From assembly GCF_000009045.1 (NCBI RefSeq), contig NC_000964.3:1674001-1738000 (forward strand): DNA of 64,000 nt, written 5' to 3'. How positions within the stretch are numbered: position 1 is the stretch's first letter; each line of letters opens with the position of its first letter. The notes beneath the pieces were generated by a model. The model saw only the letters and a list, made by a program, of their open reading frames with translations. It did not search any database and was not told the origin of the DNA. The translations under genes were made by a program, and so were the position numbers. Of this stretch, positions 3,413-33,681 are shown in pieces. The stretch comes from Bacillus subtilis subsp. subtilis str. 168. GTDB lineage: Bacteria; Bacillota; Bacilli; Bacillales; Bacillaceae.

Positions 3413-3428
3413 TTGGCTGAACCGATAC
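3402..3428 (+). promoter_or_regulatory. Candidate SigD promoter for rnhB-ylqG-ylqH
   Basis: TTTA(3402-05)-15 bp-ACCGATAC(3421-28) versus consensus TAAA-N15-GCCGATAT. Confidence 0.35.
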
Positions 3429-3450: not shown

Positions 3451-4218
3451 GTGAATACATTAACCGTAAAGGACATTAAAGACCGTTTGCAGGAAGTGAA
3501 GGATGCACAAGACCCATTTATTGCCCAATGCGAAAACGACCCGAGAAAAAGCGTTCAAACGCTTGTAGAGCAATGGCTTAAAAAGCAAGCGAAAGAAAAA
3601 GCGCTGAAAGAACAATGGGTGAATATGACTTCCTATGAAAGGCTGGCAAGAAACAAAGGATTTCGCTTGATTGCAGGTGTTGACGAGGTCGGCCGGGGGC
3701 CATTGGCAGGACCAGTTGTCGCCAGCGCAGTCATCCTTCCAGAGGAATGTGAAATACTTGGGCTGACAGACTCCAAAAAGCTTTCAGAGAAAAAACGCGA
3801 GGAATATTACGAGCTTATTATGAAGGAAGCACTGGCGGTCGGGATAGGAATTGTAGAAGCTACTGTGATTGATGAGATCAATATATATGAAGCTTCAAAA
3901 ATGGCAATGGTGAAAGCGATACAGGATTTGTCGGATACACCTGATTATTTGCTTGTTGACGCAATGACACTTCCGCTCGACACGGCTCAGGCGTCAATTA
4001 TAAAAGGCGATGCCAAAAGCGTGTCTATTGCGGCAGGTGCGTGTATCGCAAAAGTGACGAGGGACCGAATGATGAGCGCTTATGCCGAAACGTATCCCAT
4101 GTACGGCTTTGAAAAAAATAAAGGCTATGGGACAAAAGAACATTTGGAAGCTCTCGCTGCATACGGCCCAACTGAATTGCACCGCAAAACTTTCGCTCCT
4201 GTTCAATCTTTCAGATAA
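3451..4218 (+). CDS. rnhB: Ribonuclease HII
   Basis: AGVDEVGRGPLAGPV, LTDSKKLS and KGDAKSVSIAAG motifs; GTG start after AAGGGAG. Confidence 0.97.
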   Translation: MNTLTVKDIKDRLQEVKDAQDPFIAQCENDPRKSVQTLVEQWLKKQAKEKALKEQWVNMTSYERLARNKGFRLIAGVDEVGRGPLAGPVVASAVILPEECEILGLTDSKKLSEKKREEYYELIMKEALAVGIGIVEATVIDEINIYEASKMAMVKAIQDLSDTPDYLLVDAMTLPLDTAQASIIKGDAKSVSIAAGACIAKVTRDRMMSAYAETYPMYGFEKNKGYGTKEHLEALAAYGPTELHRKTFAPVQSFR

Positions 4219-4249
4219 ATCACCATGGACAAGGAGGCACCTTTTTAAA

Positions 4250-5980
4250 ATGAACATACGAAATGATGTGCAAAAGGCGCTGCAGCACCTTTTCGGGCGT
4301 ACAGCCGTCCCGCAGGAAACATCAAAAGTAAACGAAGCGCTAAACGGGGAGAAGCGTCTCCTCTTAGGAAAAGTGCTTCGTTTACTAGGAGATCAGCATG
4401 CCCTGATCCAAGTCGGCAATCAAACTGTTCAGGGAAAACTTGAAACTCAGCTTCGTCCTCAGGCATACTATTGGTTTTCCTACGAAAAAAAAACGGCAGA
4501 GCAAACAGGCCGTCTTCAGGTCGTTCAAAGCTTTGATCAAAATCCTAAAACCATTCAGGATGCAGCTGGCAAACTTTTAAATGCTATTTCAGTGAAGACG
4601 TCAAACGCAGCTCTCATGATGACAGGAGCGATGCTGAAAAGCAAAACACCCGTAACAGAAAATGATATCAAAACAGCTGTCCGCTGGATGGACACGCTGC
4701 CTTCGCAAGACACAAAAAAAGCAGTTGAAACGGTTCTCTTCGCTTTAAAGCGTGATCTTCCCATTCACTCCGAGATTTTGAATGGTGTTCACGCTGTGAA
4801 ATCGCCTGTTCCGTTGCATCAGCACGTATCCCAGCTGCTACAGGCAATCGACCAAAACCCTCAGCAGAGCCAAATGATGTCAAAGCTAAAGGAAGCAGTC
4901 ACGGTGCTTTTAAATAGTGAAATCGATGTCCATGCAGAACGGCTGATTGATAAGCTTATTTCTTTAACCGACAATACGAAAGCACCTTCTCCGACGAATA
5001 CAGCTGGAAGCAGGGAGCTTAGCACACCAGCTGGCTCCCCCGGAAAAGCCAGCCTGCCGATTGCAAATCACACAGCAGAACAGGGAAGCATACAAGAAGA
5101 GCCTGTTAAAACAGCAGCAGACATTCCAATTAAAGAAGCCCGCCAGCTGCTGGTGAAGCTGACGGAATCTGCTGAAAAAAACAGTCTCCAAATTGTGAAA
5201 GAAGCAGCAAATTGGATTAAAGCGGCTGCTTCATCGGGTGATAGTAAGTCACTTGCAGCTTCAGCTGTTTTACAGGCGGCACAAGTCACAGATCAGGAAG
5301 CCGAAGTCTTTTTAAAGGCTGTTCAGCAGACAGCACCCCATTTGGCGGATAAGGCAGATGTTCTTTCTTTCTTATCCAAAGTGAAAACGGCAATCGGCGC
5401 AAGGGACGAGGTTGCGTTCATTAAAGCGTTTGAACAAGGAAGCGCAGTCACATCTGGCGAAATGCAATCCATCAAGCTGGCTCTTTCTGCCTTAAGAGCA
5501 TCGCATGAGGTAGCCGAACCAGTCAAACAAGAAGCCGATCAGCTTTTTCATAAATTAAATGGCCAGCTTTTCATGCAGCAGGACCATCCATCATACAGCC
5601 AAATTGTAATGTCATTTCCGATGTTTTCGAAGTCAGGGGTTCAGGACATGACTGTTCTGTTTAAAGGAAAGAAAGAAGCGGATGGAAAGCTTGATCCTTC
5701 CCATTGCCGCCTTTTGTTTTTGCTGCAGCTTGATACACTAAAAGAAACCGTCGTTGATTGCTTGGTACAGCAAAAAGTCATGACCATTACAATAGAGACT
5801 GATTTCGAGCTGCAGGCTGCGATCGATCCGATGGTGCCCGCGCTTAAACAGGGGCTAAAGGAAATGGGGTACAGCCTTTCAGGGGTAAACGCTAAAAAAA
5901 GGGTTCACACCGAAGAAAAGGCTTCAATCGATCAATATATAACAAGTATCAGTGATCAGGAAGTGGATGTGAAAATATGA
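4250..5980 (+). CDS. ylqG: YlqG, 576 aa, function unknown; C-terminus resembles the FliK substrate-switch domain
   Basis: ATG 4250 after AAGGAGG (4231-37); long Ala/Gln/Ser-rich body; C-terminal similarity to FliK judged by eye only. Confidence 0.85.
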   Translation: MNIRNDVQKALQHLFGRTAVPQETSKVNEALNGEKRLLLGKVLRLLGDQHALIQVGNQTVQGKLETQLRPQAYYWFSYEKKTAEQTGRLQVVQSFDQNPKTIQDAAGKLLNAISVKTSNAALMMTGAMLKSKTPVTENDIKTAVRWMDTLPSQDTKKAVETVLFALKRDLPIHSEILNGVHAVKSPVPLHQHVSQLLQAIDQNPQQSQMMSKLKEAVTVLLNSEIDVHAERLIDKLISLTDNTKAPSPTNTAGSRELSTPAGSPGKASLPIANHTAEQGSIQEEPVKTAADIPIKEARQLLVKLTESAEKNSLQIVKEAANWIKAAASSGDSKSLAASAVLQAAQVTDQEAEVFLKAVQQTAPHLADKADVLSFLSKVKTAIGARDEVAFIKAFEQGSAVTSGEMQSIKLALSALRASHEVAEPVKQEADQLFHKLNGQLFMQQDHPSYSQIVMSFPMFSKSGVQDMTVLFKGKKEADGKLDPSHCRLLFLLQLDTLKETVVDCLVQQKVMTITIETDFELQAAIDPMVPALKQGLKEMGYSLSGVNAKKRVHTEEKASIDQYITSISDQEVDVKI

Positions 5981-6258
5981 AAGAGCAGACACCGATCAGA
6001 AAAGCTGTTGCTCTCCATTATGACGAACAAAAAGACAAGGCGCCGAGAGTGATTGCCACAGGGAAGGGCCATGTAGCTGACAACATTATAAAAGAAGCGA
6101 AAAAAGCAGGGGTCCCGATTCAAGAAGATCGGACCCTTGTCGAATTAATGCGCCATTTGACGGTAGATGATCAAATTCCTGAAGCTCTTTATGAAACGGT
6201 AGCCGAGATTTTTTCATTCATTTACAAATTGGACGAAAGCGTAAAAAACAAAAAATAG
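5977..6258 (+). CDS. ylqH: YlqH, free-standing homolog of the FlhB C-terminal cytoplasmic fragment (93 aa)
   Basis: AVALHYDEQKDKAPRVIATG aligns with FlhB [20 protein letters not shown] of this window; ATGA overlap with ylqG. Confidence 0.9.
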   Translation: MKEQTPIRKAVALHYDEQKDKAPRVIATGKGHVADNIIKEAKKAGVPIQEDRTLVELMRHLTVDDQIPEALYETVAEIFSFIYKLDESVKNKK

Positions 6259-24277: not shown

Positions 24278-25741
24278 GTGAAGCTGCTTGAATTAGCCGG
24301 ACCTTTGCTGCAAACCACAACGGGTTCTGCCGCTAAAAACATGAAAAGTAGCCAGGGAGTTTTTCAAAACTGGCTTATGTCTGAGGCTGGATTGAAGGAA
24401 CTTTCAGAACAAGGAAAGGGAACTCCTAATTCTGAAGATCAGCTTTTAGCAGATGCGCTTAAAAAGATCGGTGAATGGCTAAATGCAAGTCCTGAAGATC
24501 AAGACAAACAAAATGCGGATCTTTTGCAAACATTAAGCAAACTGACAGGGAAGCAATTGGATGCGAATGCTCTGCAAATGTTGCAAAATCTTTTGCAAGC
24601 AGTTGAATCAAAAATGTCAGGCGGGACGGATCAATTGCTCACAGAAACGGAGAAAATCTTTTCAGAAGCTAAAACGGCTCTGAGTGCCAATGATTCTGCT
24701 TCTGACATTAATGGAGCACTGAAGTCTGATAAAGAGCAATCAAATCAGGAAAATGAAGTATCCGAGCCTGCAAAAGAGCTTATCTATATCCAGATGTTCA
24801 TTAGCCAGCTCGTAGAAGGGAATAAGCTGACTGATCTCGGGAATGGCAATGAAGCTCATGCCATTTACCAAAATGGAGATCAATTCCTTTCTGCATTAGA
24901 AAAGAAGGGTGTATCTCAACAACTAATTCAGGATCTTAAACAGCAAATATTCACTAAAGCTGAGTCAAGTTCAAAACTTTACTCGATGACAGCGTCAGAG
25001 CTGAAAAGTTTTCAAAGCTTAATGGATCAAATGTCTATGCTTCCTCAAAAAGGGACCAAAGAATGGAGTTTAGCTGAAAGCCAGCTGAAAGCCTTCTTGT
25101 TATCGAAATCATCCGAATCATCACAAGACTTTGGGAAGAGTGTTCTCACACCGCTCTCGCAGAGTTCATCCAGCAAAAATGCATCGGATGTTTCTGGAAG
25201 TATTCAGCCTGTAGATAGTAAATCAGGACTCCAAATGCTGTTTTCGGGGTATCGGGGCATAGGAGGAGTTCAAACACTTGATCTGCAGCAGATGTCATCT
25301 GATATACCAAATGCCGAAACAAAAACGGTGGCTGATCAAGTGATTAATGCGTGGAAGCAGATGAAATATACGCCTTTCGGCAGATCGACGGGAAGTTTCA
25401 CTATTCGGCTGAACCCTGAACATTTAGGATTTGTCACAATCAAGCTGACAAATGAAAATGGAATGTTTCAGAGTAAAATCATAGCATCTAGCCAATCAGC
25501 AAAAGAATTGCTTGAACAGCATCTTCCTCAGCTGAAGCAATCATTGCCGAATATGGCCGTCCAAATTGACCGTTTTACTCTTCCGGTCCAAAGCGGGGAT
25601 CAGCCGATATACGGCCAGCTTGCTGATGAACAGAAACAGCAGCAAGAGGGGCAGAGACAGCAAAGACAGAAAAAGCAATCAAATGATTTTGGCGATCTGC
25701 TCGATGAAGTGTCGATGGTTGAAATGGAGGAAGAAGAATGA
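24278..25741 (+). CDS. fliK: Flagellar hook-length control protein FliK (487 aa)
   Basis: IRLNPEHLGFVTI...LEQHLPQLKQSL switch domain; acidic tail; GTG after GGGGGA. Confidence 0.95.
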   Translation: MKLLELAGPLLQTTTGSAAKNMKSSQGVFQNWLMSEAGLKELSEQGKGTPNSEDQLLADALKKIGEWLNASPEDQDKQNADLLQTLSKLTGKQLDANALQMLQNLLQAVESKMSGGTDQLLTETEKIFSEAKTALSANDSASDINGALKSDKEQSNQENEVSEPAKELIYIQMFISQLVEGNKLTDLGNGNEAHAIYQNGDQFLSALEKKGVSQQLIQDLKQQIFTKAESSSKLYSMTASELKSFQSLMDQMSMLPQKGTKEWSLAESQLKAFLLSKSSESSQDFGKSVLTPLSQSSSSKNASDVSGSIQPVDSKSGLQMLFSGYRGIGGVQTLDLQQMSSDIPNAETKTVADQVINAWKQMKYTPFGRSTGSFTIRLNPEHLGFVTIKLTNENGMFQSKIIASSQSAKELLEQHLPQLKQSLPNMAVQIDRFTLPVQSGDQPIYGQLADEQKQQQEGQRQQRQKKQSNDFGDLLDEVSMVEMEEEE

Positions 25742-31819: not shown

Positions 31820-32599
31820 ATGAATTCAATTATTGACTTATTTCCTGCTTTTTTATTGGTTTTTATTAGAATCTCTGCTTTTTTTGTAACGATTCCGCTA
31901 TTTGGACATCGAAATGTGCCAGCTGTTCATCGCATAGGTTTTGCTTTTTTTCTTGCGGTCATTTGTTTCAGCACCATTGATAAACCGCCCTCTTTGGAGA
32001 TAGATGAGCACTATATGCTTTTGGCGTTTAAAGAAGCTTTGGTCGGCCTATGTCTGGGTTTAATTGCTTATATGATGATTGCCGCAGTGCAGATTGCCGG
32101 CTCGTTTATTGATTTTCAAATGGGATTTTCAATAGCAAACGTTATTGATCCGCAAACCGGTGCACAAAGTCCGTTGATTGGCCAGTTTATCTATACGATG
32201 GCACTTTTGTTTATGCTGAGTGTCAATGCCCACCATTTGTTGCTGGATGGTATTTACTACAGCTTTCAGTATATTTCAGTTGATCAGGCATTTCCGAATT
32301 TCGGCGATGAAAAGTTTGCCTATTTTATTGCGAAAAGCTTTAATGCAATGTTTATTATCGCTTTTCAAATGTCAGCGCCGGTTGTGGCCAGTTTGTTTCT
32401 AGTTGATTTAGCATTAGGTATCGTGGCTCGAACTGTTCCGCAGTTAAATGTATTTGTGGTCGGTCTGCCTTTAAAGATCGCTGTCAGTTTCATTATGCTC
32501 ATTGTATGTATGTCCGTTATCTTCGTCGTTGTCCGGAATGTTTTCAGTTTAACGATTGAAACGATGCGGAATCTTTTAGCATTGGTCGGTGTTTCTTAA
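31820..32599 (+). CDS. fliR: Flagellar export gate protein FliR (259 aa)
   Basis: AGSFIDFQMGFS and ARTVPQLNVFVVGLPLK; hydrophobic; ATG 31820. Confidence 0.97.
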   Translation: MNSIIDLFPAFLLVFIRISAFFVTIPLFGHRNVPAVHRIGFAFFLAVICFSTIDKPPSLEIDEHYMLLAFKEALVGLCLGLIAYMMIAAVQIAGSFIDFQMGFSIANVIDPQTGAQSPLIGQFIYTMALLFMLSVNAHHLLLDGIYYSFQYISVDQAFPNFGDEKFAYFIAKSFNAMFIIAFQMSAPVVASLFLVDLALGIVARTVPQLNVFVVGLPLKIAVSFIMLIVCMSVIFVVVRNVFSLTIETMRNLLALVGVS

Positions 32600-33681
32600 T
32601 GAAGCTTAGAGTTGACCTGCAGTTTTTTGCGGGAGAGAAGACAGAAAAAGCCACTCCGAAAAAACGGAAGGATACGCGAAAAAAAGGGCAGGTAGCCAAA
32701 AGCTCGGATGTCAATACCGCCGTTTCTTTACTGGTAATATTCCTTTCGCTTATTGCAATTGGTCCGTATATGAGAGACAGGCTGCTGTCATTCATAGAAA
32801 CATTTTATACCGAATCGCTCACAATGAAGCTCTCAGAATCAAATGTGCATACATTGTTTGTCAGCTTATTAAAGGATATGGGCATGATACTCGCACCGAT
32901 CTTGCTTGTTGCTCTTGTTGCAGGAGTCGTAAGCAACTATATGCAGGTTGGGTTCTTGTTTTCTGCTGAAGTGATACAGCCTAAGCTTGAAAAACTGGAT
33001 CCGATCAAAGGCTTTAAACGAATATACAGTATGAGGGCGATTGTAGAGCTGATTAAATCAATTTTGAAAATCGTAGTCGTCGGTTTTGCGGCTTTTGCTG
33101 TGCTTTGGCTGCATTATGGAGAAATTCTCCGGCTTCCTCTCCTGACACCCGAAGAGGCACTTTCTTTCGTTTCAAAACTCACTTTGTGGATGGGACTAAG
33201 CGGTGCAGGTGCATTGTTGATTCTTGCTGGTCTCGACTATTTATATCAGAGATTTGACTATGAGAAAAATATCAAAATGTCAAAACAAGATATAAAAGAT
33301 GAGTACAAAAAATCTGAAGGAGACCCGATTATCAAGTCTAAAATTAAACAAAGACAGCGGGAAATGGCGATGAGGCGGATGATGCAGGAAGTTCCAAAAG
33401 CAGATGTCATTATCACAAACCCGACTCACTATGCGATTGCTTTGAAATATGATGAAGAAAAAATGGACGCACCTTATATTGTTGCAAAAGGCGTCGACCA
33501 CCTTGCGTTAAAAATCAGGAAAATTGCTAAAGAGCATGATGTCATGATGGTAGAAAACAGACCGCTTGCCCGTGCGTTATATGATCAAGTGGAAATTGAC
33601 CAGGCAGTGCCGGAAGAATTTTTTAAAGTTTTAGCAGAAATTCTGGCTTACGTATATAAAACAAAACAAAAAGTATATTGA
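32599..33681 (+). CDS. flhB: Flagellar export switch protein FlhB
   Basis: EKTEKATPKK, MSKQDIKDEYKKSEGDP and NPTH autocleavage motif (33418-29). Confidence 0.99.
   Translation: MKLRVDLQFFAGEKTEKATPKKRKDTRKKGQVAKSSDVNTAVSLLVIFLSLIAIGPYMRDRLLSFIETFYTESLTMKLSESNVHTLFVSLLKDMGMILAPILLVALVAGVVSNYMQVGFLFSAEVIQPKLEKLDPIKGFKRIYSMRAIVELIKSILKIVVVGFAAFAVLWLHYGEILRLPLLTPEEALSFVSKLTLWMGLSGAGALLILAGLDYLYQRFDYEKNIKMSKQDIKDEYKKSEGDPIIKSKIKQRQREMAMRRMMQEVPKADVIITNPTHYAIALKYDEEKMDAPYIVAKGVDHLALKIRKIAKEHDVMMVENRPLARALYDQVEIDQAVPEEFFKVLAEILAYVYKTKQKVY

Follow-up and report, generated by a model that had tools for sequence, protein, structure and literature searches.

The ylqG-ylqH gene pair of Bacillus subtilis as a candidate fliK2-flhX module: a divergent FliK-type protein next to a free FlhB C-terminal domain

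Introduction

Why should a bacterium that has a canonical fliK and a canonical flhB encode parts of the same switch a second time, away from its flagellar operon? This question is raised by ylqG and ylqH, two overlapping genes in a stretch of 64,000 nt from Bacillus subtilis 168 (referred to as the window; all coordinates are window positions). In the canonical switch of export specificity, the T3S4 domain of FliK acts on FlhB's C-terminal domain in its cleaved form (FlhB-CC), which is the docking site of early substrates. A 2026 study of Salmonella reported a physical ejection and degradation of FlhB-CC that depends on FliK, and found that late export is locked when FlhB-CC is absent. The proposal that FliK ejects FlhB-CC raises the question of what purpose is served by an FlhB-CC that was never tethered and by a switch domain that is probably not secreted.

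Free homologues of FlhB-CC, known as FlhX (COG2257), occur in many phyla with flagella, and their genes are, as found here, joined time and again to the gene of a T3S4-domain protein through an overlap of 4 nt. The only functional datum on free FlhB-C homologues that we know of is the "spare part" result from Helicobacter pylori. There, FlhX (HP1575) behaves genetically as a spare part when FlhB-CC is deleted, as far as the work is described where it is cited (Wand 2006, Smith 2009, as cited). The original prediction for the Bacillus locus, made from the letters of the DNA, had proposed a second FliK-type switch-domain protein together with a genetically pre-cleaved C-terminal fragment of FlhB. 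Here, we describe an analysis of both proteins, of their genes and of their relatives that supports this proposal. On balance, we think it probable that ylqG-ylqH is the Bacillus representative of a widespread fliK2-flhX module and would serve the switch of export specificity as an accessory component or a spare.

Results

[quoted passage not shown]

YlqH (93 aa; 5977..6258, forward strand, as are all features given below) was compared with the canonical FlhB encoded in the same window (360 aa, a protein that has the membrane part and the NPTH motif; 32599..33681). The two share 37% identity over 86 residues (BLASTP, E = 8e-16), and the alignment sets in with N-P-T-H of FlhB against T5-P6-I7-R8 of YlqH. 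YlqH thus corresponds to FlhB after its cleavage site, as had been claimed. The Pfam profile Bac_export_2 matches YlqH at 7e-20, only with the last 78 of its 335 positions (258-335), and with NCBIfam TIGR00789 (flhB_rel), the model for stand-alone FlhB-like proteins, it scores 137 bits, the cutoff being 117.35 bits; a full-length FlhB is encoded in the same window, as is expected for this class. A sequence search of the PDB found solved structures of FlhB-C, YscU-C and EscU-C with E-values from 4e-10 to 6e-4. By sequence YlqH stands nearer to FlhB of flagella (E = 1e-10) than to EscU of injectisomes (3e-4).

The absence of a membrane part and of a cleavage motif, also part of the original prediction, was borne out. 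The maximal Kyte-Doolittle hydropathy is 0.76 for YlqH and 1.33 for YlqG, compared to 2.47 for FlhB, and by this measure neither YlqH nor YlqG has a membrane segment. Where FlhB has NPTH, YlqH has TPIR, and none of 80 YlqH homologues reconstructed from related genomes has NPTH at the cleavage position. In contrast to the cleavage site, the docking pocket is kept. In Salmonella FlhB-CC, early substrates dock at A286, P287, A341 and L344 (PMC13344023); the equivalents in YlqH are A22, P23, A76 and F79. Among the 80 homologues the first alanine is found in 68, and the proline, the second alanine and the F/L are found in all 80. Judged by its sequence, YlqH is a genetically pre-cleaved FlhB-CC domain of the FlhX type and should be functional. 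That YlqH is a paralogue of FlhB-C was already known: it is publicly annotated as "FlhB-like flagellar biosynthesis protein", and a 2023 survey of flagellar genes had FlhX among its B. subtilis/Salmonella query proteins. The conservation of the pocket is new.

The C-terminal domain of YlqG

YlqG (576 aa; 4250..5980) is a predicted soluble, divergent protein of the FliK2 type. The comparator is the canonical FliK of the window (487 aa, Flg_hook at residues 367-442; 24278..25741, in the fla/che operon). The original prediction had aligned the C termini of the two. As a pairwise similarity this did not hold, since the alignment has an E-value of 33 in BLASTP and is not significant; by profile and by structure the similarity was recovered, and in the same register.

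Word-indexed homologue searches with YlqG, as a single sequence or as a profile, returned only near-identical proteins of the B. subtilis group. When 1.84 billion cluster representatives were searched exhaustively with HMMER, at least 1072 relatives came up at E < 1e-3, 781 of them at E < 1e-10, with the similarity concentrated in an N-terminal and a C-terminal block. From these, 60 diverse members were aligned (alignment A1). When the 60 homologues were scanned singly, 20 matched Flg_hook (PF02120) with E-values from 3.6e-7 to 1e-2; those matches that were inspected individually all had 18-24 bits, below the threshold of 29.8 bits. They share one register on the C-terminal block, in which profile positions 14-83 start at "CR(I/V)LFYL". 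The only other recurrent family was DUF6240, with 6 matches. In the reverse direction, a hidden Markov model (HMM) of YlqG residues 440-560 was searched against the 455 six-frame open reading frames (ORFs) of the window and found FliK first after YlqG itself, with an E-value of 0.0055. Comparison of the YlqG family with the window FliK by hhalign gave E = 0.05 at full length and 0.013 for the C-terminal domains, with YlqG 480-545 on FliK 377-434, which is the register that the original prediction had drawn. Some UniRef entries point in the same direction: the name [quoted passage not shown] is given to homologues from Metabacillus and Paenisporosarcina, and "FliK" to one from Aeribacillus.

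A model of the C-terminal domain (residues 440-576), built with 58 sequences translated from the window and related loci, has a predicted local distance difference test score (pLDDT) of 84. In a structure search of 350,542 PDB chains its top match was the T3S4 domain of PscP (5cuk; E = 8.5e-3, probability 1.0, target-normalised template modelling score 0.50, root-mean-square deviation 2.9 Å, 67 columns), and FliK-C (2rrl) was also matched, with a probability of 0.99. Both were found again when the full-length model of YlqG was used. By sequence, neither YlqG nor its family profile found more in the PDB than helical matches due to chance. The C-terminal domain is thus predicted to have the T3S4 fold, with E-values that are modest. 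Since lines of evidence that are individually modest, from profile and from structure, agree with each other, we regard the C terminus of YlqG as very probably a homologue of T3S4/FliK-C. This places B. subtilis YlqG in the FliK2-type class, which is new.

In public records YlqG is mostly "hypothetical". The orthologue from B. velezensis (NZ_CP083716.1, locus L085, 1301-3004) is annotated as "glycosyl transferase" in RefSeq, and one UniRef entry, from B. stercoris, has a similar name. This looks like a propagated misannotation, because neither the sequence nor the model of YlqG gives support for a glycosyl transferase. Identification of YlqG as the FliK2 partner of YlqH corrects the annotation.

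Architecture and tail of YlqG

YlqG had been described as a switch domain that follows a long low-complexity body. This description had to be given up. Only 25 of 552 segments of 25 residues (4.5%) fall below the 5th percentile of the ordinary proteins of the window, fewer than in FliK, and AlphaFold2 with the 60-sequence alignment predicts a largely folded protein (mean pLDDT 83, predicted template modelling score (pTM) 0.79). In this model residues 1-35 are poorly ordered and are followed by a family-conserved, five-stranded beta-barrel of OB/TRAM-like type (residues 36-94; 4355..4531), for which Foldseek found TRAM and OB domains. The window FliK has no counterpart of the barrel, and an HMM of the N-terminal domain finds nothing else in the window. 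A helical body (residues 102-441; 4553..5572) with mostly high pLDDT follows; its length varies in homologues. The only long disordered linker is a Pro/Ser/Thr-rich stretch within it (residues 249-289; 4994..5116; pLDDT < 50). Residues 449-550 (5594..5899) form beta-hairpins that carry the invariant Pro457, and then the T3S4/FliK-C-like domain with the order beta-beta-beta-alpha-beta. No more than two residues are invariant throughout the 60-sequence alignment, and Pro457 (5618-5620) is one of them. The model ends in a low-confidence tail (residues 556-576). Across the family the whole protein ranges from 386 to 715 aa.

In several homologues the first part of the helical body, directly after the barrel, gives weak matches to Pfam DUF6240 (profile positions 130-209 of 276), a family that may be related to that of YlqG.

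The extreme C terminus (residues 569-576; 5954..5977), DQEVDVKI in B. subtilis, is conserved in the family as Y-x-G-V-D-phi-[RK]-[IV]-COOH. Among 146 full-length YlqG representatives the aspartate at position -4 is present in all 146. The tail is set off from the switch domain by a variable disordered linker and stands directly before the overlapping start of ylqH; the end of the window FliK is quite different. The folded architecture and the invariant tail are, like the conservation of the YlqH pocket, new. As the tail slightly resembles the FlhB strand that precedes NPTH, we considered that it could be the missing beta-strand of FlhB-CN (...KADVIITN/PTH). The sequence gave this idea no support: with the tail joined to YlqH, the match to Bac_export_2 was neither extended nor improved in any of four cases.

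The export motif FxxxPhi is present in the window FliK and absent from the first 60 residues of B. subtilis YlqG. Within the first 45 residues it occurs in 79 of the 146 relatives, a number counted without regard to alignment position or chance expectation.

The pair across genomes

A locus scan with one genome per species, using a 16-sequence subset as query, gave 283 YlqG relatives; the best 80 loci, whose labels are almost entirely Bacillaceae, were analysed. In all 80 a YlqH homologue follows directly after YlqG, and in all 80 its start codon overlaps the stop codon of YlqG by exactly 4 nt. The context rnhB-ylqG-ylqH-sucC is kept in about 71 of them. In nine loci from Neobacillus and relatives (L029, L030, L040, L042, L049, L056, L058, L059 and L065) the intact pair is found elsewhere, which indicates that it moves as a unit. 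No flagellar genes are near the pair in these nine. Neobacillus paridis (L029, 4943-11571) is the moved locus whose neighbours were examined; there the pair follows ftsE-ftsX and genes for a CtpB-type S41 protease and a PDZ protein. On a contig from Brevibacillus, rnhB is accompanied by a YlqG-like gene, which a small ORF overlaps.

More distant pairs were found by tblastn with YlqH. In Pseudomonas aeruginosa (L082) a 492-aa protein annotated as FliK (Flg_hook, 67 bits) is followed by a 111-aa protein of the "EscU/YscU/HrcU family", and the pair adjoins ccmABC. In Cupriavidus campinensis a Flg_hook protein (50 bits) is followed by a 95-aa FlhB-C homologue, right after fliD-fliS-fliT. Both pairs have the ATGA overlap. 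The overlap of 4 nt thus recurs in Bacillota, Gammaproteobacteria and Betaproteobacteria, which is a new observation. Several tblastn matches, from Acetoanaerobium, Pseudarthrobacter and Aristophania, proved to be full-length FlhB and not FlhX.

The same arrangement has been described twice before. In P. putida, fliK2-flhX (PP_4328-PP_4329) is FliA-dependent, lies in the flagellar cluster and is conserved across Pseudomonas, with its function described as unsolved; in Nitratiruptor the arrangement is given as flhX-fliK. Because these share the organization found here, the B. subtilis pair is to be counted as a member of an ancient, tightly coupled two-gene module.

Occurrence with flagella

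If the pair works with flagella, its presence in non-flagellated relatives is of interest. At the syntenic site the pair is absent from the non-flagellated Staphylococcus aureus (ylqF-rnhB-sucC-sucD) and from the non-flagellated Enterococcus faecium and L. fermentum (ylqF-rnhB-dprA); it had been proposed that retention in such relatives would speak against a flagellar role, and none of the three retained it. In addition, an early phyletic-profile study found that the pattern of COG2257, to which YlqH belongs, follows flagellar genes. The direct evidence that would connect the Bacillus pair with flagella is the conservation of the YlqH pocket; evidence by analogy comes from the equivalent proteobacterial pairs, with their place in a flagellar cluster and their FliA control.

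Locus and gene calls

The gene order is rimM-trmD-rplS-rbgA(ylqF)-rnhB-ylqG-ylqH-sucC-sucD-dprA-topA-trmFO and onwards to the fla/che operon, and the pair lies about 11 kb upstream of flgB. The coordinates, the genes and the ATGA overlap were all found as originally given, as was the position outside the fla/che operon; the neighbours of the pair are rbgA-rnhB on one side and sucCD on the other. ylqG begins only 31 nt after the rnhB stop at 4218 and is preceded by a ribosome-binding site, AAGGAGG (4231..4237), 12 nt before the ATG. ATGA at 5977..5980 holds both the stop of ylqG and the start of ylqH, implying that the two genes are probably translationally coupled.

A mechanical list of ORFs gives a longer ylqG that starts with the ATG at 4082, encodes 632 aa (4082-4249 being extra) and overlaps the end of rnhB; this form is used in one public record, from Bacillus sp. 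LM 4-2. We prefer the start at 4250, because the ribosome-binding site and the homologues support it.

ylqG evolves much faster than its neighbours rnhB and ylqH. Between B. subtilis and B. velezensis the amino acid identity is 52% for ylqG, 80% for rnhB and 84% for ylqH, and the nonsynonymous divergence (dN) is 0.42, 0.13 and 0.08, respectively. The ratio of dN to synonymous divergence (dS) is not computable for ylqG in this comparison, dS being saturated.

Discussion

Comparison with known systems

The closest known counterpart of ylqG-ylqH is fliK2-flhX of Pseudomonas. There, too, a T3S4 (Flg_hook) gene stands immediately upstream of a free FlhB-CC homologue of about 100 aa with an ATGA overlap, and a canonical fliK and flhB are also in the genome. 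The C terminus of the FliK2-type protein of P. aeruginosa carries V-D at -5 and -4, and by hhalign its pre-domain helix and Pro-containing hairpin align with those of the YlqG family. The differences are, first, that the Pseudomonas protein passes the Flg_hook threshold with its 67 bits and YlqG does not, and second, that the Pseudomonas operon is FliA-dependent and usually in a flagellar cluster, whereas the Bacillus pair has housekeeping genes as neighbours and a search for a sigma-D promoter found none. The N-terminal barrel HMM scores the P. aeruginosa protein with an E-value of about 1.

FlhX of H. pylori is, like YlqH, a stand-alone FlhB-CC homologue without NPTH or membrane part that belongs to TIGR00789/COG2257; its role as a spare part was demonstrated genetically, whereas YlqH is known here from its sequence. 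With the canonical FliK-FlhB switch the pair shares the T3S4 domain, the FlhB-CC domain and the pocket for early substrates. However, the canonical FlhB-CC is released from a membrane protein by autocleavage at NPTH and YlqH is encoded free, and the secreted ruler FliK differs from YlqG, for which a folded structure is predicted and which has in addition a beta-barrel, a helical domain and a tail that is invariant. Finally, the injectisome pair YscP/PscP-YscU provides the best structural match of the YlqG C-terminal domain, the PscP T3S4 domain, and matches of YlqH to YscU/EscU C-terminal domains; but there is no injectisome in Bacillus, and the sequence of YlqH is closer to flagellar FlhB.

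A model for the function of YlqG and YlqH

According to the model that we favour, YlqG and YlqH would be made in a fixed proportion through translational coupling and would most likely associate in a soluble complex that corresponds to FliK-C on FlhB-CC. YlqH, which is never tethered, would offer its hydrophobic pocket to early substrates of the rod/hook type and could, as FlhX does in H. pylori, occupy the position of FlhB-CC at the flagellar type III export gate. YlqG may govern this occupancy by means of its switch domain and its conserved C-terminal tail; it would be cytoplasmic and mostly folded, and the pair would not be a second hook-length ruler.

Several observations weigh against this model. 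In B. subtilis the pair is outside any flagellar operon and sits between rnhB and sucC. A pattern search found no recognisable sigma-D promoter upstream of the pair; the sole CCGATA, at 3422, has no -35 element. Neither the gap between rnhB and ylqG nor the region after ylqH has a terminator. Because there is no terminator before the pair and no sigma-D promoter, the genes are probably transcribed from the rbgA promoter together with housekeeping genes. The flagellated Listeria monocytogenes and Enterococcus gallinarum have no pair at the syntenic site, and for E. coli and Salmonella only full-length FlhB was found among the matches listed; flagella therefore do not need the pair. On the protein level, YlqG itself has no match to a Pfam family, Flg_hook included, or to an NCBIfam family, and its similarity statistics are all modest. 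No natural fusion of YlqG and YlqH was found among the 146 representatives. In a mirror-tree comparison of YlqG-C and YlqH the raw correlation of r = 0.68 dropped to a partial correlation of r = 0.05 once five genes of the neighbourhood and the remainder of YlqG were controlled for, so that it carries no information on co-evolution. Finally, the invariant Pro457 is changed to glutamine in four evolved clones of B. subtilis PS-216 that still swarm, three of which also have a 1-bp deletion in epsE (PMC11523185, Table 3).

The first alternative is that the YlqG-YlqH complex never docks at the gate and is a cytoplasmic decoy or buffer; by sequestering FliK-C, or early substrates via the pocket of YlqH, it would adjust how sharp the switch is or when it occurs. 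A strictly conserved docking pocket in a protein that has no membrane anchor could be understood in this way, and an expression that is probably constitutive and linked to housekeeping would also fit. We nevertheless consider a decoy unlikely, as H. pylori FlhX replaces FlhB-CC, at least as far as that work is described where it is cited, and this requires docking at the gate.

Still less is to be said for a function outside the flagellum, in which a T3S4/FlhB-C heterodimer was domesticated for another process of the Bacillaceae. The pocket of YlqH is conserved, the equivalents in Pseudomonas and Cupriavidus are in a flagellar cluster, under FliA control in Pseudomonas, the phyletic pattern of COG2257 is that of flagellar genes, and the three non-flagellated relatives that share the synteny do not have the pair. 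All this argues against such a domestication, although it would account for the position between rbgA-rnhB and sucCD-dprA-topA that is kept in about 71 of the 80 loci, for the pair after ftsE-ftsX-ctpB and the PDZ-protein gene in Neobacillus, and for the lack of a detectable sigma-D promoter and of adjacent flagellar genes.

It is tempting to speculate that YlqH is a part that re-arms the switch, although we regard this as improbable. After FliK-dependent ejection of FlhB-CC, YlqH could re-occupy the vacated site and return the gate to early (rod/hook) export, for instance when a hook-basal body is rebuilt or repaired, with YlqG loading, holding or removing YlqH via its T3S4 domain and tail. 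If this were true, a switch that is called "irreversible" would be reversible in many bacteria that have fliK2-flhX.

That YlqG is a second secreted hook-length ruler (576 versus 487 aa), as the original prediction had offered among other roles, is very improbable: it does have a T3S4-like domain at its C terminus, a family with the length range given above and a poorly ordered stretch of about 35 residues at its start, but the prediction is of a compact fold with barrel and helical domain, its body is not of low complexity and it has no FxxxPhi in its first 60 residues. As for the canonical ruler, Courtney, Cozy and Kearns reportedly found in 2012 that fliK mutants of B. subtilis make polyhooks, in which case YlqG would be no substitute for FliK. 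The excellent flagellar genetics of B. subtilis makes the role of the module directly testable.

A minor observation concerns the genome collections. Several records filed as "plasmid" in PLSDB that carry core genes look like pieces of chromosomes or whole chromosomes, examples being records of S. aureus (683 kb), E. faecium (162 kb), Listeria (407 kb), B. velezensis (807 kb) and Acetoanaerobium (2.6 Mb). This is a caveat for users of that collection; at the same time, chromosome fragments filed as plasmids make a small natural synteny experiment possible.

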